DNA of 63,364 nt, counting the filler, from Reticulomyxa filosa (taxonomy: Eukaryota; Protista; Foraminifera), in assembly GCA_000512085.1 (NCBI GenBank). It is 13 parts of 13 records of this genome, joined end to end, with 100 filler letters (N's around TTAATTAATTAA, not from the genome) between each part and the next. Parts side by side here need not be neighbours in the genome. Positions count along the whole stretch, not along the records: positions 42,786 to 48,318 come from ASPP01006251.1; 12 more parts are not named here. The stretch is one strand, 5' to 3'. Positions 3,001-48,267 of the stretch are shown in pieces (the stretch's first letter is position 1; each line of letters opens with the position of its first letter). A program made the position numbers and the translations under genes. A model generated the notes under the pieces. That model was not told the origin of the DNA. It was given only the letters and a program-made list of their open reading frames with translations, and did not search any database.

Positions 3001-3661
3001 ATTCGTGCATTTTTATTTCAATGTGAAGCATTGAAATTCTTGGCCGGATCAAATGAATTGAGTTTTGAAACTGTTGGATTATTTGTGAATGTAGAGTTGG
3101 TGATTTTGTTGGGGTTATTTTGTCCATTGATTGTACCATTGTGTGCTATGGCAACTGTGTCCAATATCCTAAATTTCCAGTACTTGTTGAGAAAAAAAAA
3201 CAAACATGTGACATCATGGGAAGAAAATCTCATTGAAAAAAGTAACATTTACAAGCTCTCTGATGAGATTCCTGCATTTCCAATGTCGGTGTTGATTGTG
3301 CCGTTTTTATTGCAACAATCAATTTGGATGTTTTCTAGTGCATTCAGTAATGGTCATTCCTACCTGATAAAGAGTGTGTTTGCTTATGCATTTTCTATTA
3401 TTAATATTTGTTTCATAGTAGCTGTCATTTTTGCACGACGTTTTCATGGAATTCAAATACTACAACAACAAAGTTAATCTTTTCTATGCATAAATAAAAG
3501 AAGCTAATAAAATATTTCTGTATTTTCAAAAACAAATATCAGTGAAAGAAAAATTTAAAAGTGAATCCATGGCAAGCACCACTGAAGAAGAAAATTCGAT
3601 ATTATATGATGAATCAGAATATCGGCGAATGCAGCCAATGGAAACACTAAAAGAGCAATGA
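66..3661 (+). CDS. LRR receptor-like protein with C-terminal multi-pass (about 10-11 TM) membrane domain; 5'-partial, multi-exon
   Basis: Manually spliced GT-AG exons 66-137, 226-297, 396-467, 550-837, 947-1189, 1288-1574, 1666-2811, 2906-~3472 and ~3543-3661 give one open frame. It encodes plant-type 24-aa LRRs (LSGTIPxEIGNLxxLxxLxLxxNxL), then hydrophobic helices. No kinase domain. Confidence 0.85.
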
Positions 3662-4943
3662 AAATTTTTATTTAATATAGCAAAGGGTTAAAACTGCTGT
3701 TTTTTAAATAGTTAATTTTTTTAATGCAGTAGCTATCTTAAATTTGAAAGCATTCCCAAATGCAAACTATTTATTGTTATTAAATAACAAAACAAACAAT
3801 AATCACAACAATAAAAATAAATATCCTTATCAATTTCAGTTTGCAAAAAAAATATAAAGATACCAAAAGTGATAAAGCAAATAAAACTAAACAAATTACA
3901 AAAGACAAAACTTTGATACTATAGACCTCACATTTGAACTACCAGCCTTAAACCAACAAAAGAAAAGCGAATAATATGCTATCTTTGAGCAATGAAATTA
4001 TAATATCAAAAAAAGGTTACAATCAAGATTTTGAGTTTTTTTTACTTTTAAAAACAATACAATATCTATTTTGGAAAAAAAAGAAAATTAAATAATATGA
4101 TTTTTTAAAAATTTGGAATATAGATCAATTCATCAATTGAATACTTTACATTTGTTATCCACAAAAGTTATTCGATTGAATATTTACATCGATGCGGATT
4201 TCTAAAGTTTTCTTCAAGATAAACATTTTTTTCGTATCAAAAATTTTGAAAATTGTATGCGAACCCAACAAATCTTATGCATGAGCTCGAAAAAATTAAC
4301 CAAAACTCGATCACTTTTCAAGATAATTTTTTTTTATATCAAAAAAAATGGTTTAAAAATTGTGTATACGAGACAAAAAATTGCTAACGTTTTTCGATTT
4401 TCCGTTTCCACATCATCACCAAAATTATTTTTAAAAAAATTATATCAGTTAAAAACTGATTCTTCCGTTAAAAAAACAACTAGTATTACATACTGCACGA
4501 ATCGAATCCTCATCGCTTAAATTAATTAAGGCTTTATCCTAAGTTACACTGTTATTGTTATTTTCTCGTAACATTCCTTTATGTCGATGTTAGTAAGTAA
4601 CAACTGTGACTTAGTAACAATAATTAACATTTGTTTGTCTAAATAGTGACATGATGTTCGTGACTGTTGCCAAAACCAAAGACAATAATTTATAAATAAT
4701 TTTTACTTAAAAAAGTTACATAATAAATATTTGTACTGTAAGCACACTTCTTATTTTATAAAGTTAATCACTAACTGATCTCAAGATTAGCTTCACTGTA
4801 GATATTGATTTATGTGCAAATGATTTGTCACACAATGTTCAAACAAGTGGTTAAGTGCATTTCCAACTTGAGAAGGTATTATCAACTGTGACAGTGACAG
4901 ACCTTTTTAAAAAAATTTTTGTGTTGGTTAAAGATTTTTGGCA

Positions 4944-7522
4944 ATGTCTTATAACTGGGGAAAACGGCCCTATTCTCAATATAGTTATGAATTCAATAAT
5001 AGGACTGAGAAGATCCATGGTTATGGAAAAGATATTGGCCAACGGAACACAAAAGAGGACCTCCAACAGCAACTGAGAAGCTACGAGAACAAGCCGTATA
5101 ATTTTTACAAAGACTTGAAAGGCACAGAGTGGTATTTCGACGACTTTTCACTTTACTTTGACTATATCCAGTCGGACCCCTTTGCTCCCCCATCCTTGTT
5201 GCGAGTGAGAATGCGGCTTTCCTCGACCAACCTTCCGTTGAAGTTTTACCACAATAGGGTACGGAACATCGCAAGTCGTGATTTTTTGACGCGCTTTTTT
5301 GCGGAGTTGAGAATGACAAGGATGTTGTGACATGAGTGAGAATGAGAGTGAGACAAGGCTAAAATGTCATAAGTAATGTTATAAAAAGCAATAATAGCAA
5401 TAAGAGAAGACAAGCAACAAACAAACAACAAACAACAAACAAACAAATAGTGTGTGTAGGCAGAACCAATACAACACGAACAAAGAAGAAGAAGAAGAAG
5501 TAGAAGAAGAAGAAAGATACGCAGGATGGAGTTTACCAAAAGGTGGAAAATTGTGTATCGACGAGCCCGACCAGTACGTATTGGAGCGCACAAGCGTGAC
5601 GATCGAACTGGAGAAAAAGGAAGACAAAGGCGAAGACAAGAGCAAAGACAAAAAAAAAGCACAAGCACAAGCACAAGAAGAGACAGAAGATATGGAAAAG
5701 CCAGGAAAGGGGTGGCTGGAAGTGCGGTTATCATGCAGTCTTCCTGGACGAGGACGAAGGATATGTGGCGAGTGGTGCGCGCAGATAGTATGTTCGCGCC
5801 TGCCGCACGTGCTGCATCAGAGCATCATGTATCGCAGATACCAAGCGGTGAAGCGGCAAATCGACGAGAAGGATGCCGAGTTTGAGATGCACGTGAAATC
5901 GGTGGAAAATGAGGAGTACTTGCGCGAGGTGATGTTGCCAAAGTGGAAAGCAATAGCATTCATTCGCGATGGCAGCATCTTGCCACGAGCCTCGGGCGTG
6001 AGCAACTTGCCATTGCCTTTGGACAAGGCCATACCTTTTGTGGTCGACAAACAAGATGTGTTGTATCGCGAAGTCGAGCTGCCCAATCCCATCCCGATGC
6101 TGTGTTACAAGGACAGGAATGATGGCTCGTTCGAGTTTGAAAAGCGACTCACCAAAACTATCAGCGGACTTATTATCCCTTTTGGCATCACGCTCATCGT
6201 CGGAGGAGGCTTTCATGGCAAGACCACGCTCTTGTCGTGTATCGAGTTTGGCGTGTACAATCACACCGTCGGTGATGGCCGCGAGTGCTGTGTGTCTGAT
6301 CCCACTGTTAGCAAAATACGCGCTGAAGATGGACGGTCCATTGCTGGTGTCGATATTAGTCCTTTTATCAATAATCTACCTTTACAACGCCAGTTGTCTT
6401 TTTTTTTTTTTTTATTTTTTTTGCTTTTGAACTAAATTTAAAAAAAAAAAAAAAAAGGGAATGCGACAAAGGCTTTCAGCTGCACCAATGCAAGTGGCAG
6501 TACTTCACAGGCTGCAAATATTTGTGAAGCATTGGAAATAGGATCACGATGTCTGCTCCTCGATGAAGACACTTGCGCGACCAATTTCATGGTTCGAGAT
6601 ATCACTATGGAAAAATTAGTCGGCTCAAGTAAAGAACCTATCACTCCGTTCATCAGCAAAGTTCGCTGGTAAAATTTTATTAGTTTTATATTGTGATCCC
6701 CCCCCCCCCCCTTTTTTTTTTTGTATGAGATAATTTTAAAAATTATGTACATTTATATACTTATGCATGTGATGTCAAATACAAATATAAAAGTCTGTAC
6801 AACGAACTAAATGTGTCATCAGTGTTGGTGATTGGAGGTCTTGGCAGCTACTTCCACGTCGCGGATCAAGTGATAATGATGGAAAGCTATGTGCCCAAAA
6901 ATGTCACACAAAAGGCAATGGAAATTGTTGGGCAGAGTTGTGCCAATTAGCATAAGCTCACAAACAGAACAAATGAACATTGACACAGAGGAAAAGATTG
7001 CAGACGGTAATGATACCACTCTCATTGGCTTGCCTCAATTTAATTCTTTTGGAAGCTTGTCCAACCGAACTCCCGATTCCCGCACCATCAACGCAAACCA
7101 AAAAAAGGCCCTAAAATCCGAGCTGTATGTTGTTGTTTTTTCCTAATCTGTGTTGATGACTGGCAAACCCAACGTTTGTATAACTCGAATACTGAACAAC
7201 ACAGAAAGAGAAAACGATTTTATTTGGTTGGGAAGAGATTGACGTTAGTGCTGTTTCTCAAATTGTCGAGATGTCACAAAGTAATACAATAGGTTATTGC
7301 ATAGCGTATCTTCACCGACATTATATGGAATCTCGCAAAATGAACATGAAAGCACTTATGCAAAAAATGCAAAAGGATCTGGATGAACGTGGATTGGATG
7401 CTCTCTCCAATGTTAGTTATAATGTTCAATATTCTGGGAAATTAGTTCGACCAAGAATATTTGAAATCGCAGCGTCTCTCAACCGGCTCAGAACATTGAA
7501 AGTTTTTCTGAAACGGCAGTAA
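4944..7522 (+). CDS. ABC-class ATPase domain protein (ABC_ATPase/COG3044 family, MRB1590-like); multi-exon
   Basis: Family motifs QSDPFAPPS, SLPGRGRRI, FIRDGSILPRASG, Walker A GGGFHGKTT, KIRAEDGR, FSCTNASGSTSQAA, LLLDEDTCATNFMVRD, EPITPF and C-terminal RPRIFEIAASLNRLR, spread over spliced exons. Confidence 0.88.
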
Positions 7523-9018
7523 TATGGAGTCAAATTACTATCCCGCTAGTTAGCGTTTCACAAAATTAAGTGGAGTAAATAAAAAACAAAAAATGTTTCA
7601 TGTCCAGTTGCAAAAGGAACTAGAAAATCTGTGTCTCGAGTGTGAATTTTATTCAGATCGAGTATCACTAATAATTTTGATGTAAATGATATAGTAAAAA
7701 TTTACATATGCAAATGATGATCTCAACTGAACTCTGAAAATCAGTAGAAACCTCTTTTTCTTTTCATGGATGTGTCTGTTTTATTATTGAACTTGTTTTA
7801 GTTTATATTGATGAGCCGTCAAAAAGTAATTGTATATATACTAACAAAATCATACAAAATATGATATGTAGAAAAAATCAGCAAAATATTTAAAATTTTG
7901 AAAGAGAAAACTTGTGTGAAGGTAATGAACTTTTTTGCGTCCACGTGCCGTCCAAATGCATCGAACTTAAAGAGGTGGATGAAGTCTTTTAAGCTCGAAT
8001 TAGATTGTGTTATTAATTACATTGAAATATGTGGAGTTTACAGCAATTTTGTAATTTTTTTTCGACCTTGACAATAAATGAAATTTTTTATTGTTCAGCA
8101 AAGGAACCAAAGTAAACTAAGACACTGACTGCAAGTAACTTACACCAAAAACAAATTAATGTTTTTAAACTCGGAAGCAAAACAAAACTGCATTGCCATT
8201 GCAAATTATAAAAAATTGCTATGGTGGGTGAGGAAAAAGAAATGACAGAAGAAAGGCCAAAGGAAAAACTTGAAGAAAAAGCACAGCAAACACATCGAAA
8301 TTGGACAAAGCCTGTCAAACAAAAAATGGAGCTGTTTGTATTTAATCACAAACAATCCACAAAATCTAAAAAAATATATTTCATCAATAAAAAGGTTTCT
8401 CAATTTTAAAGAGGCAAACCACACAACCCACGACATGACACTTGCTAAAAAAAAAGGTGGATTCACGTCGCTCCATTAACAAAAAATGAAAAAAGCAACT
8501 AAAACATAAACACTAAATAATGAGAGTTCTTGAAAGAAATACAAAAGACAACAGATTTACAAACTTGGGTAATCAAGAAAGCAATTCTTTTTCCCTCTAC
8601 AACATCATTTTTCCTACCAATACACTTTGTGGATACAGGCAAACAAACACAAAAAAGCACATAAACAACAAACAAAACAAATTTCAATAATACACCCGTC
8701 ATCTTTTTTCTTTCCTACGTTAACACGCATCTCTCACAGCAAAAAAAATTGGCTTTTAGTTTGGGGAGGAGCAAAAGGGCCGTCCCTTGGTAACTTTGTT
8801 TTAATGAAAAAGCTCTTATTGTTCCCCCTTTTTTTTTTTTTTTTTGATAATTGCTGTATTTCTTCGACATTTTTGCACATATCGGTCGTTCTCAAAAAAG
8901 AAAGGAGGAAAAAAAAAATCAAACAATCAAGCAAAACAAAAACAAAAAAATAAAGCAAAAAAAAAAACCAAATAACGTAAAAATAAAAAAAAAGGAAGAC
9001 GCTAAATCTTCATCAGAT

Positions 9019-43097: not shown

Positions 43098-46000
43098 TTA
43101 AAACGTTCCACCGCGTTGTTCTACAAGTAATTTCTGCTGAGGAGTCAAACAATTAATATTTTCCCAAATACTATCTTTCATCGATAAACCGTAGCAATGA
43201 ACACCTGCTTGCCAAATACACTTCATCAAACCAACATCAGTTGTTTTATTATCAATGCCCCACAATCGAATCGTTCTATCCTGTGAGCATGACACGATTT
43301 TGGAACCATCTGGTGAAAATTGTATTCCATTGATATCACCTGTGTGTCCTTCTAATAATTGTACTTGTTGTCCTGAAGATACATCCCATATTCGGATTGT
43401 TTTATCTCGTGAATACGATACAACTTTAGATCCATCAGGTGAGAATTGAGCTTTCCTAATGTCACTTGAATGTCCCTTTAATACATGAAGCTGTTTTCCA
43501 GACAATACATCCCACAAGCCTATTGTTCTATCCCATGAACATGACAGAATTTTCGAACCATCTGGAGAAAATTGTATTCCACTTATACGTTTTGAATGAC
43601 CTTCCAATAATAAAAGTTGTTTTCCAGATGATGCATCCCACAAACGAATAGTTTTATCATTTGAACATGTTGCTAGCTTGGACCAATCCGGTAAGAATTC
43701 TATTTCATTTATAACAGCCGAATGTCCTTTCAAGTATTGCAAATGCTCTCCAGATAATACATCCCACATGTGGACAGTCTCTCTTGTGCAAATCACAATT
43801 TTAGAACTATCAGGTGAAAATCGCATTCTGTGTATAAAATGTGTATCTTCTTCAAACGACTGAAGTTGTTTGCCAGACAATACGTCCCATACTCGAACTA
43901 TTTTATTATCAAAGCGAGCAGCGATTTTCGAGTAATCTGGTGAAAACTGGACTTCATTTAAATTACCAAATAGTCCATCCAAACTTTGAATTTGTCTTCC
44001 TGACGATATATCGAATATTTGAAGGGTTTTATTGTCCGAGTATGGCACAATTTTGGACAAATCAGGTGAAACTTGCAACCCCCATGTCGAATCAAATAAT
44101 CGAAGTTGTCTTCCAGACAATGCATCCCATATTCGAATTGTTTGATCCGATGAATACGACACAATCCTGGAGCCATCTGATGAGAATTGAACTTCATGTA
44201 CGCGGTTAAAGTGTCCTTCCAATAATTGAATTTGTCTTCCGGAAGATACATCCCACAATCGAATAGTTTTATCATCTGAACATGATACAATTTTTGTACT
44301 ATCGGGTGAAAATTGTACTTTGTTAACTTTACTTGAATGTCCTTTTACGACTTGAATTTTTTGATTTAATGATGCATCCCATATTCGAATAGTTTTGTCA
44401 CGTGAACATGATACAATTTTGGAATCATTAAAAAAAAATTTTACACCAGTTACAGCACCTGCATGTCCTTCCAATAGTTGAAGTTGATTTCCAGATGATA
44501 CGTCCCATATTCGGATTGTACTGTCATCTGAGCCAGATACAATTTTGGACGAGTCAGATGAAAATTGTACAGAATTTATCCATTCTGAATGTCCTTCTAG
44601 CACTTGAATTTGTTTCCCGGAAAATACATCCCACAATCGAATAGTTTTGTCCCATGAGCAAGACACAACTTTGGAACAATCTGGTGAAAAACTAGCTTTA
44701 GTTACTGTCCCTGTATGTCCTTCTAATAATTGAAGCTGTTTTCCAGATAAGAAATCCCACACTCGAATAGTTTTATCCCATGAGCATGATACAAGTTTTG
44801 AACTGTCTGGTGATAATTGCACACCTGTTACACTACTTGAATGCCCTTCCAATACTTGGATATGTTGGCCTGATAATAAGTCCCATATTCTAATGGTCCT
44901 ATCAGTCGAACATGAAATAACTTTTGAGCCGTCAGGTGAAAATTGTACTTCGTTAACATTATCTGAATGTCCTTCCAATAATTGAACTGGTTGGTTTGAT
45001 GATAAATTCCATATTTGAATAGTTTGATCACTTGAACCCGATACAATTTTTGAACCGTCTGGTGAAAATTGTGCAGCATGTATACCTTCTTTGTGTCCTT
45101 CTAATGCTTGAAGTTGTCTTCCAGAGGACAAATCCCATATTCGAATTGTTTTATCATTTGAACACGAGACAATCTTTGAACAATCTGGTGAAACTCCAAT
45201 TCCATTTACATCACCTAAATGTCCATTTAAATATGCGTACTCCCCAAAGTAAATTTCATTCATTGATGCATTTGTGAAGTTGGCCTTATTTAAGAAAGCT
45301 TGAAAAAAACTGACATTGTCCAAATTTGCGTTTTTAAAATCAGTTCCCTCAAGAAATGCATGATCTAAAATTGCATGTGGAATTTTGATATTGCTCCAAT
45401 CTCTATAGTGAAGATTCACGTTTGCAGAATTAAGTATAGTGATTGCATTTGCCGCTGCAATGTTGGTATGTTCATTTGTTTTGGATGCTTCAATAATCCG
45501 AAACAATCTCGATTTCAAATTCACAAATATTGGATTTGTGTCAAAAATCCGTTCACTGATAAACTCGATAATACCAGCTTCCTCGTTCAACAGTTTGGAA
45601 TTGATAATAAAATTTGAAGCATAGCTTTCAAATTGTTTCTGAAACTCTTGATCACTGGGACTGAAAGTCTCGGACCTCCACGAAAGAATATCAAATATAA
45701 TTTTATGTGCTGCATAATATTCTTGACACGATTTATGCAAAAATTGATATTTGTTGTCTCCAGTTCTTCTCAATAAATATTTTGCAATACTGTCGCCATT
45801 AAAGTACTTTTCCCAAACATCTTGTATTTTTACAACTGAAGCATCGGTAGTTTTATCAGTACTTTTGATTTCTTTTTTTTCATCCACAATACTGTCATTG
45901 TTTTTATTTTCAATAACTGGATCTAATTTAGTCCAAATGTGAGAATCCTCAGAGCGTGATTCAGTTTCAATTGCAACTTGGCTCCCTTGAACAAACATAT

Positions 46001-48267
46001 CAAATCCTAAGTCAAGACAGTACTGTTTGAATTTGGATTTGATTTTGTTAATACTAATTTGAATTCTTAATTCTGCTAATTTGGATATTACGTGTTGCAT
46101 ATGAATATCAATCCAATAATCATTGAAAACTTCATATACATGTGATTTTGAAATTGCATTCGTTTCACCATATTTTTTAACTAATGATGGCAACACAGTT
46201 AAAATAAGTTGCAGGAGAAATGGTTCTTCCATCATTTTTTGTAAATTTGGATAATTGCTTAACGTTTCTTCGTATTGTTTTAGTGTCCAATTATCGCTGT
46301 CTTTTTTTTTTCCATATTCATTTTTGATTTAATTTTTGCAAATTTTTCAATGTAACTACGCATTTGCTGTTTTGTAAAAGGCCATAAATACATCATGGAT
46401 GTTGCAACATAGTTTTGGTTTATGCCCGTTAATGTAGTCTGAATATCAGCTTCGTTCAATACATTAATTCGACATGTCACAATAACTTTTGCATTCCATT
46501 GATTCAAATTAAAACGGTCATAAAAATATTGTCCACTTTTATCACTATTGCGATAAAAATCAAATATTTCATCAAATCCATCCATGATAAATACAAAAGA
46601 TACTTTTTCACGAATTGCATCTATAATTTCATTACTGACGTGTTTGCCTTGTAATGCTTGTAAAATAATATTTGTTTCATTTTGTTTATTATAGGCTTTT
46701 GATAATGATATATAAACAGGAATAGGTCTCTTTGAATCACATTTGTAATCATTCCACAATGTCTCTTCCAAATGACGACAAAATAGACTTTTTCCCGATC
46801 CTGATTTTCCTTGAATTATCATCACTTTTCGTTGGTGTTCTTGCTCACTCTTTTTTTCTTCTTTTTCCAAAAAGTCAATTACACGCTGATGGCAGTCATG
46901 TGTTTCATGTTTTTGACTGTCATCACCATCGATGTGCGGATAATTATTGCTTTTAGGGGATATATGTTTCAAGCGCTTGTTGTATGGTGACATCCTCTTC
47001 CATCTCTTGCTTTTTTGATTCGTGTAATAGTAATGCAAAATCAGCACAACTTGCTGGATTTTTGTCTCCAATAATTTTTTTTTTGTAATATTCGTATAAA
47101 ATGACATAAATAGCTTTTCCTTTCATTTTGTCTGGAGTAAATTTGCAAAGGTGTTCATATACAAATTGTGCAATTTTCAATGGTATCTTCTCGTTGATTT
47201 CCGCCTCTGTTTTTTTTGATAGTTGTGGTGGTTTCAATATTCCAATATCCAAATGGGATCTATACTGTTTTGCTAATATTTGTGTCCCCTTGTCGTCAAT
47301 CCATTCACAAATGATGTCATTTATTTTTGTCAATGTTTCGTCACTTGCTTGTTTCAACTCTTTTTCTTCAGAGTCACTCGGTTTCCAAGCCCTGATAAGC
47401 TCATAGAACAAATGACTTAATTTGGGATTTTCAATGACAGTGTATCCTTCCAAGGTTGTAAAAATTTTTAATGTTGCTTGCATTTCAATATAAACATCAT
47501 GTTTTGGGACATACAATTTAATATTATGGAATCGATGATGTGTTCTCGATTGCCTTTCAAAGAAATCTTTATCTTCAGATACAATCAGATTAAATTGCTC
47601 TGCTTTTTTCATTACGGCCACTGCTGTCTGCAGTTTGGTCGGGTTGTCACATAAAATAGTAAATCTTCCAATATCAAACACTTGATTAAAATCACCACTA
47701 TAATCGTGTCGAATCTTTTCCAATAATCTCACATTATCTTTCACTTTAGGTGGTTTCACCACTGTTATCAAATATTTCTGTAATTCCGCCACCAAATTTA
47801 GTATCTCTTCGCTGTTCATTGCATGTTCGCTCCGGGATATTAGATCTTCTAAACTCGTTGCATGTTGTCTGATTTTTTTAGCTTTCAATTTATAAACTAA
47901 TCCAGATTTGATTGTATAAAAGCATTGATAGCAATTGTCTTTCACAGGAACAGATTCACCACTCGCACAAATAGAGTGCTCTGAATTGAAAAGCATCGCC
48001 TTTGTAATGGATGTGACAGTCAATTGTCTGCAATCAGGACAGCAATAGGAAGTGTTGTTCGATACAAATGAAATGTCACCAAATTCAATATTCACCCATA
48101 TTGGAAGCTTTGCTTTTGCTGCCAAGCAATACTCATTTGTGCAATAGCCTTGCAAATTAATTCCCGGTCTAATTTCTCCAACCTCTACTTTTTCTTCTTC
48201 TTTTTTCAATTTATCCAGTTTTTTTTCAATCTTTTCCATGCTTTTCCGTCCTTGATTGTTGTCACTC
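43098..48267 (-). CDS. NLR-like protein: Cys-rich domain + RelA/SpoT-like nucleotidyltransferase + NACHT + pentapeptide repeats + ~16 WD40 repeats; two frame breaks (46953-46958, 46302-46311); may be 5'-partial
   Basis: Three collinear ORFs. RSH-like KxxxRxxEK..DIGR..KDF..HRFHNI..IEMQ..SHLFYE; Walker A GKSGSGKS; Walker B FIMDGFDE; IVTCR; FLHKSCQEY; AAANAITIL + pentapeptide repeats; 42-aa WD repeats (GH..V..V.FSPDGSKIVSCS.DKTIRIWD). Confidence 0.88.

Follow-up and report, generated by a model that had tools for sequence, protein, structure and literature searches.

A predicted RSH synthetase-type domain at the head of a NACHT-WD40 gene family in the foraminiferan Reticulomyxa filosa

Introduction

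RSH (RelA/SpoT homologue) enzymes are known from the bacterial stringent response, from toxins and from anti-phage effectors. Here we describe a gene of the foraminiferan Reticulomyxa filosa in which a domain with the RSH synthetase fold precedes a NACHT NTPase and a WD40 repeat array, an architecture otherwise listed among fungal NOD-like receptors (NLRs). The gene occupies 43098..48239 on the minus strand of the window, by which we mean the whole stretch of DNA analysed (63,364 nt, filler included, joined from 13 parts of genome assembly GCA_000512085.1), and it is the single gene of a complete 5,533-bp contig at 42786-48318, an AT-rich region with a GC content of 26–37%. A protist origin had been proposed in an earlier sequence-only reading of the window, and R. 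filosa fits it. In our view the gene probably belongs to a very large R. filosa family of STAND (signal transduction ATPases with numerous domains)/NLR proteins whose output module is an RSH pyrophosphokinase head of the Tas1/small-alarmone-synthetase type.

The closest described proteins by architecture are fungal. RelA_SpoT-NACHT-WD40 proteins were catalogued in fungi such as Gaeumannomyces graminis (Dyrka et al. 2014, PMC4986451), as the sequence-only reading had noted, and RelA_SpoT is a canonical but rare N-terminal class of Sordariales NLRs (PMC12258605); in both studies these NLRs are listed from genome annotation only. The R. filosa gene has the same module order (RSH-type, NACHT, WD40), and in both cases the first domain is read as an enzymatic effector. 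In fungi, however, RelA_SpoT is one of many N-terminal domains and is seldom used, whereas in R. filosa, a member of Rhizaria/Foraminifera, all family members examined have it, in about 100 copies, and it is accompanied by a four-cysteine β-sandwich and by pentapeptide repeats. Judged from sequence, the R. filosa family is thus an already known fungal NLR architecture in another eukaryotic supergroup; what is distinctive is the uniform effector in about 100 copies, the four-cysteine domain, the pentapeptide repeats and a G-loop with a histidine substitution. We know of no biochemical work on the fungal RelA_SpoT NLRs.

A second likeness is to fungal proteins of the HET-E/NWD type, in which NACHT is also followed by a long regular array of 42-residue WD40 repeats with few variable positions, and whose hosts are also fusing syncytial organisms. 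The effector there is HET rather than RSH, and identity to a fungal NACHT-WD40 protein (P0244) is ∼28%. A literature search turned up no paper that connects Reticulomyxa with NACHT, NLR function or ppGpp, in agreement with the earlier statement that no characterization in this lineage was known; the one hit for Reticulomyxa together with NLR seems to be an unrelated paper on animal apoptosis.

Three groups of characterized RSH enzymes bear on the head domain. Tas1/Apk1 (PDB 6ox6) is a type VI secretion toxin of Pseudomonas aeruginosa that depletes ATP by making (p)ppApp (PMC11782079). RelQ/SAS1 and RelP/SAS2, of bacteria, make (p)ppGpp as free-standing tetrameric synthetases. CapRel and FaRel2 belong to the toxic small alarmone synthetases (toxSAS); they are tRNA 3′-CCA pyrophosphokinases with an anti-phage role, in which an RSH synthetase serves as the effector of abortive defence and stays inactive until a trigger is sensed. 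In these respects we liken them to the proposed R. filosa receptors.

The RSH synthetase-type domain

The gene reads as three contiguous frame pieces of 428, 224 and 1060 codons, for which introns are unnecessary: piece A at 48239..46956 (48239..46953 as an open reading frame, ORF, including the stop), piece B at 46954..46283 with the first part of the NACHT NTPase, and piece C at 46280..43101, all on the minus strand. The pieces lie in three different reading frames with two frameshifts between them; as assembled the gene is not one ORF. The domains follow each other as a four-cysteine β-sandwich, the RSH synthetase fold, a helical linker, NACHT, pentapeptide repeats and 16 WD40 repeats. A single RSH-NACHT-WD40 protein had been claimed: the tripartite order of effector, nucleotide-binding oligomerization domain (NOD) and C-terminal repeats is correct here, and one paralogue has it in one ORF (see below), yet in the window copy it is split by the two frameshifts. 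Searches for domains and folds were made with the pieces taken separately, or with the database model P0193; P0193 (‘NB-ARC domain-containing protein, partial [Reticulomyxa filosa]’, 1,689 residues) is 100% identical to the gene over the compared region.

The predicted RSH synthetase domain spans 47295..47858 (minus strand; residues 128-315 of the model), with its core motifs at nt 47753-47391. The motifs of the sequence-only reading, those of NACHT and FLHKSCQEY included, were all found at their places on the minus strand; in piece A they are VKDNVRLLEK (aa 166-175), GDFNQVFDIGRFTI (182-195), KDFF (224-227), THHRFHNIKL (233-242), IEMQ (251-254) and SHLFYE (275-280). The expected match to the Pfam family RelA_SpoT (PF04607) was obtained over aa 166-254 with E = 1.7e-4, at a score of 22.3 bits that stays under the Pfam gathering cut-off of 27. 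Precomputed PF04607 annotation is present in the relatives P0012, P0016 and P0032. Pfam scanning of the gene's three pieces found no HD hydrolase domain, just as had been read from the sequence; PADLOC and PHROGs gave no match for the RSH piece, and NCBIfam nothing relevant; a feature search in ESM-Atlas was not informative either.

Profile searches link the domain to characterized enzymes. A profile built from the Reticulomyxa-type family alone (A2) matches Tas1 (6ox6) with E = 2.4e-4. Against 1.8 billion representatives the same profile matched 125 proteins, and PF04607 was found in a few of those scanned with Pfam (P0094 with E = 3.6e-10; P0103 and P0110 weakly). When widened with relatives (A3), the profile matches Tas1 at 4.3e-21, RelP/YwaC at 1.5e-10, RelSeq at 4.3e-9 and RelQ/YjbM at 2.3e-8; these matches extend through the full domain, and the A3 alignment pairs Asp189 with RelSeq Asp264, Glu252 with Glu323 and His235 with Tyr308.

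Structure comparison leads to the same enzymes. An AlphaFold2 model of piece A, with the family alignment as input, has a mean predicted local distance difference test (pLDDT) value of 84.5. Foldseek against the PDB places Tas1 at the top (E = 8e-7), and the hits that follow are nearly all RelQ, RelP, Rel, an exported Streptomyces alarmone synthetase and CapRel. With VIA-align, model residues 128-315 match RelP (Z 12.3), Tas1 (Z 12.2), RelQ (Z 11.7) and CapRel (Z 10.6); the top 20 rows contain RSH enzymes only (Z 8.5–12.3, 126–169 residues aligned), and generic nucleotidyltransferases (Cid1, Pol mu, cGAS) reach Z 8.3 or below. Fold search and profile search both point to RSH enzymes, as the sequence-only reading had it, and the similarity, by sequence and by model, is far beyond chance. 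It should be kept in mind that the fold, profile and conservation evidence overlap to some degree: all three draw on the family alignment, which was also the input for the structure prediction.

Residue conservation was counted over 72 family domains that are otherwise 50–85% identical. The catalytic pair is nearly invariant, Asp189 in 71 domains and Glu252 in 69; Lys167, Lys175 and Arg192 are each kept in 70; for His276 and Tyr279 the number is 70 or higher. Near-invariant Asp, Glu, Lys and Arg in a family of this divergence argue for selection on catalysis, and the residues kept (donor-ATP, Mg2+ and catalytic) make up, judging by the alignment, the set needed to bind ATP-Mg2+ and transfer pyrophosphate. 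Together, sequence and model support the view that the head of piece A has a genuine RSH synthetase fold with catalytic Asp and Glu retained.

The G-loop departs from the usual pattern. The Tyr of this loop is a conserved contact of the acceptor base in alarmone synthetases (PMC11782079), while in the window copy the loop reads THHRFH, with His235 at the place of the acceptor-stacking Tyr (HHR vs Gly-Tyr-Arg). Over the 72 domains position 235 is His in 61, Tyr in nine (reading HYR) and Phe in one, with one gap. The HHR reading of the earlier note is therefore correct; the non-GTP acceptor deduced from it is weakly founded, since Tas1 keeps Gly-Tyr and nine of the 72 domains have HYR. The change from Tyr to His (HHRF in place of GYRD/S), together with the Pfam score under threshold, could also mean that the RSH fold has been kept in an inert form, or for some other nucleotidyltransferase chemistry, and serves mainly as an oligomerization or adaptor module. 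We find this improbable, as the Mg2+-binding and catalytic Asp and Glu and the ATP-phosphate Lys and Arg would hardly be so nearly invariant in a family that is 50–85% identical.

Compared with the three groups of enzymes introduced above, the putatively active head resembles Tas1 most. Tas1 is the best solved relative by sequence and by Foldseek and is tied for best in VIA-align (169 residues aligned, 20% identity); it shares the motifs K-x3-R-x3-K, D-x2-R, E-x-Q and H-x2-Y-E and the insertion before the last motif. Tas1 is, however, secreted as a toxin against bacteria and has an immunity protein, whereas the R. filosa domain sits in a receptor-like protein, and Tas1 retains a Gly-Tyr G-loop where the window copy has His-His. 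The window contig, having a single gene, carries no secretion or immunity partner. RelQ and RelP (5ded, 6fgk, 6ewz) have the same fold (Z 11.2–12.3) with catalytic Asp and Glu aligned, and differ in their conserved G-loop Tyr, with 15–18% identity. CapRel (7ztb) matches by fold, with only a weak match in sequence (E = 0.05); the sensor of these toxSAS enzymes is a fused pseudo-zinc-finger antitoxin domain rather than NACHT-WD40, and the G-loop Tyr is essential there.

The family in R. filosa and its relatives

A search with piece A gave 71 matches, with identities of 36–83% where most of the query was covered, and all close matches were from R. filosa. Long NACHT-WD40 models related to piece C number 60, and an RSH-like domain was found at E < 1e-20 in 118 retrieved proteins. 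At least 39 gene models combine the four-cysteine domain, the RSH domain and the NACHT P-loop, and the remaining NACHT-WD40 relatives are N-terminally truncated. Such a count of paralogues and effectors had been proposed in the earlier reading; among the NACHT-WD40 family models with an intact N-terminus no alternative N-terminal effector was found. The paralogue L004 has an uninterrupted ORF of 1,244 codons (3001..6735) with the four-cysteine domain, the RSH domain, the P-loop and WD40 repeats; therefore the RSH-NACHT-WD40 fusion is real at the DNA level. Paralogues were also traced to assembly GCA_000512085.1.

Several side observations concern the family members. Pfam domains were not found in the N-terminal extensions of paralogues. 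In one R. filosa protein, P0076 (1017 aa), the RSH domain is at 707-887, behind 700 residues without a Pfam match, which is a non-NLR context. The family is under-annotated in the public R. filosa proteome, where its members appear as ‘hypothetical’ or ‘NB-ARC/WD-40’.

Metagenomic relatives with the same head are P0032 (57% identity where the two align) and P0051 (36%); more distant ones are an RSH-TPR protein (P0094) and an Ank-RSH-NACHT protein (P0107). In a quick tree of RSH domains, made without the fungal RelA_SpoT NLR sequences, the foraminiferan clade is sister to the metagenomic RSH-TPR and Ank-RSH-NACHT sequences and not to bacterial toxin-like ones, with moderate support (88 in the Shimodaira–Hasegawa-like approximate likelihood ratio test, SH-aLRT). 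The tree thus hints at a wider clade of NLR-associated RSH domains. The nearest outgroup in this tree consists of P0107 (L006 2745-6257), P0094 and P0098.

The size of the family also bears on whether these are conflict genes at all. WD40 and STAND proteins are generally known to have many roles, and immunity is proposed here by analogy; a housekeeping function, such as regulation of the cytoskeleton or of transport in the reticulopodial network with NACHT-WD40 as a generic scaffold, would agree with both. We regard it as very improbable nonetheless, for the massive expansion to about 100 divergent paralogues and the combination of a toxin-type enzymatic head with a regular sensor-type array having few variable positions are hallmarks of conflict systems.

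Proposed function and what weighs on it

In the STAND/NLR mechanism that we consider probable for this family, the WD40 array would sense a ligand or trigger, NACHT would exchange nucleotide and oligomerize, and the N-terminal RSH heads would be activated through proximity, assembly or release from autoinhibition; all three steps are modelled on described systems. An active head would transfer pyrophosphate from ATP to the 3′-OH of an acceptor, an adenine nucleotide being the likeliest. As the output we rank (p)ppApp synthesis with depletion of ATP first, because the nearest characterized relative, Tas1, depletes ATP in that way; pyrophosphorylation of the tRNA CCA end, as by CapRel and FaRel2, would come second, and (p)ppGpp third. 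The outcome may be arrest or death of the affected cytoplasm in a conflict or non-self response. By analogy, a role in non-self recognition is plausible in view of the huge expansion of the family, its toxin-like effector and the life of R. filosa as a fusing syncytial network.

The boldest form of the proposal, in which about 100 NACHT-WD40 receptors share a Tas1-like pyrophosphokinase weapon and their activation turns the ATP pool into (p)ppApp or blocks tRNAs, is tentative, and we are inclined to doubt it. If true, alarmone-type nucleotide chemistry would for the first time be the means of killing in a eukaryotic immune or allorecognition system, and a syncytial foraminiferan would have a fungal-style incompatibility, evolved or acquired separately.

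A milder chemistry could be drawn from the same comparisons. With its catalytic residues conserved, and with canonical small alarmone synthetases matching nearly as well as Tas1, the domain might make a second messenger such as (p)ppGpp, used in signalling or to manipulate bacteria that serve as prey or live as symbionts, rather than act as a toxic effector; the same idea was raised for fungal NLR RelA_SpoT domains (Dyrka et al. 2014, PMC4986451). Among solved proteins, though, the best sequence relative is the toxin Tas1, most of the more distant relatives form the C-terminal parts of very long proteins in the manner of polymorphic toxin domains, and a partner hydrolase domain was not found. 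A second-messenger role therefore receives a low probability from us.

Several points weigh against a receptor with a toxin-like pyrophosphokinase head. The RelA_SpoT score of the window copy is under the Pfam cut-off, and the His-substituted G-loop makes an unusual acceptor or reduced activity possible. The immune function is argued by analogy only, and experiments on an RSH domain linked to an NLR are not known to us from any eukaryote. As for the window copy itself, co-translation of its three pieces is only putative. The break at 46955 takes two single-base differences, or a change in the C run plus a 3-nt difference, to repair, a pattern which in this alignment looks less typical of a simple sequencing error.

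With RSH as its single and strongly conserved effector across about 100 copies in Rhizaria, the family shows that the combination is not a fungal oddity. It also offers many natural variants for asking whether eukaryotic NLRs act through ATP-consuming pyrophosphotransfer, in parallel to NAD+ depletion by TIR domains.

Frame breaks in the window copy

The first frame break is at 46949..46958 (minus strand), where TAA 46955-46953 comes right after a run of four Cs and coding resumes in the +1 frame. Paralogues read through this place unbroken as IPLQANNYP, or, in the longer reading, ETYIPLQANNYP; a DNA alignment of the window copy with paralogues L001 and L002 shows two single-base gaps close to each other. 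The second break is at 46302..46311 (minus strand), a run of 10 As, after which the frame of piece B meets TAA 46282-46280. The shift is placed in the A10 run and not at the stop because, in the alignment of paralogues, the conserved NW-T-x-x-QYEETL is already in the frame of piece C.

Paralogue L001 is broken at the same poly-A site: its run of 11 As (7912-7922) is also one base short of in-frame. The other breaks that we saw are all single-base indels, in L002 at A5 (∼1815), in L004 at T5 and A6 (∼6700 and ∼7295) and in L003 at one base (∼3975). Altogether, the five copies inspected have about one to two indel breaks each, mostly in homopolymer runs, and none of the five has a nonsense substitution. 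In the window copy all catalytic and P-loop residues are intact.

These breaks may be real, in which case the window copy would be a recently dead pseudogene giving at most a 428-residue product with the β-sandwich, the RSH domain and the linker and without NACHT-WD40. Two frame breaks within 5.1 kb point in that direction, as does the break at 46955, where two single bases lying close together set the copy apart from L001 and L002; moreover, large fast-evolving NLR families generally contain many pseudogenes. We see this as a possible, if less than likely, explanation, given that nonsense substitutions are absent, that the catalytic and P-loop residues are intact and that indel breaks, mostly in homopolymers, occur in all five inspected copies, which has the look of systematic assembly error. 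Breaks that are indels only and mostly in homopolymers, with the same poly-A site short in two copies, favour such an error, and judging from the sequences both frameshifts are likely to be homopolymer assembly errors rather than real inactivation. Alternatively, the shared short poly-A site could be a slippage-prone one. Assembly GCA_000512085.1 was presumably made from pyrosequencing data, with which homopolymer errors would fit.

Programmed stop-codon frameshifting of the Euplotes type, or a ciliate origin, was suspected at one stage from NNN-TAA-A at both piece ends together with the low GC; this was rejected since the organism is R. filosa and the second shift lies inside the A10 run, not at a stop.

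The breaks have left traces in the public gene models. P0193 bridges both of them, within 46949-47165 and 46283-46360 (minus strand), with invented introns, by which 69 true residues of piece A are swapped for about 55 out-of-frame ones and part of the NACHT C-terminus is dropped. In the paralogue models P0073 and P0005 introns are placed within continuous ORFs or across frame breaks. Upstream of the ATG at 48239 the frame is open to the contig edge (48240-48318, minus strand), through low-complexity, AT-rich sequence, and for this reason the P0193 model is called partial by NCBI; paralogues begin near the same Met, and the ATG at 48239 is probably the true start.

Other modules of the gene

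Two modules were missed in the sequence-only reading, the four-cysteine β-sandwich that precedes the RSH domain and a set of pentapeptide repeats ahead of the WD40 array. The sandwich is at 47865..48191 (minus strand; aa 17-125), with invariant C33, C38, C67 and C70, and was modelled separately with a pLDDT of 91. It belongs to no Pfam family, a Foldseek search of the PDB gave no match better than E = 0.19, and the best Z of a wide VIA-align comparison was only 5.8 (generic cupin- or crystallin-like sandwich), with no convincing solved relative. Look-alikes by shape, with TM-scores of 0.70–0.76, are in ESM-Atlas clusters with proteins from rotifers, ciliates and Mucoromycota, some of which carry ubiquitin, RING or ADP-ribosyltransferase domains. 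From the model, the sandwich is possibly a eukaryotic domain not yet described, one that accompanies conflict-type enzymes.

A conserved helical linker at 46956..47294 (minus strand; aa 316-428), for which no family match was found, joins the RSH domain to NACHT. The first part of NACHT, at 46283..46954 (minus strand) in piece B, has the P-loop GKSGSGKS at 46810-46787 and the Walker B motif FIMDGFDE; its C-terminal part, with a helical region that includes FLHKSCQEY, is at 45396..46280 (minus strand; aa 1-295 of piece C). NACHT (PF05729) was matched with E = 4.5e-10 and 40 bits, above the cut-off of 26.7, and both Walker A and Walker B are present. Pentapeptide repeats (PF00805, E = 1.4e-5, 25 bits, cut-off 20.2) follow at 45291..45377 (minus strand); between NACHT and WD40 they are annotated in many paralogues too, an insert unusual for an NLR. 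The WD40 array at 43257..45257 (minus strand) gives a Pfam signal of E = 1e-152 in piece C. The earlier reading had put it at about 16 repeats behind NACHT, and 16 units were counted, each of ∼42 aa with one shortened, at a DNA period of 126 bp; their framework is highly regular, with variation confined to a few positions.

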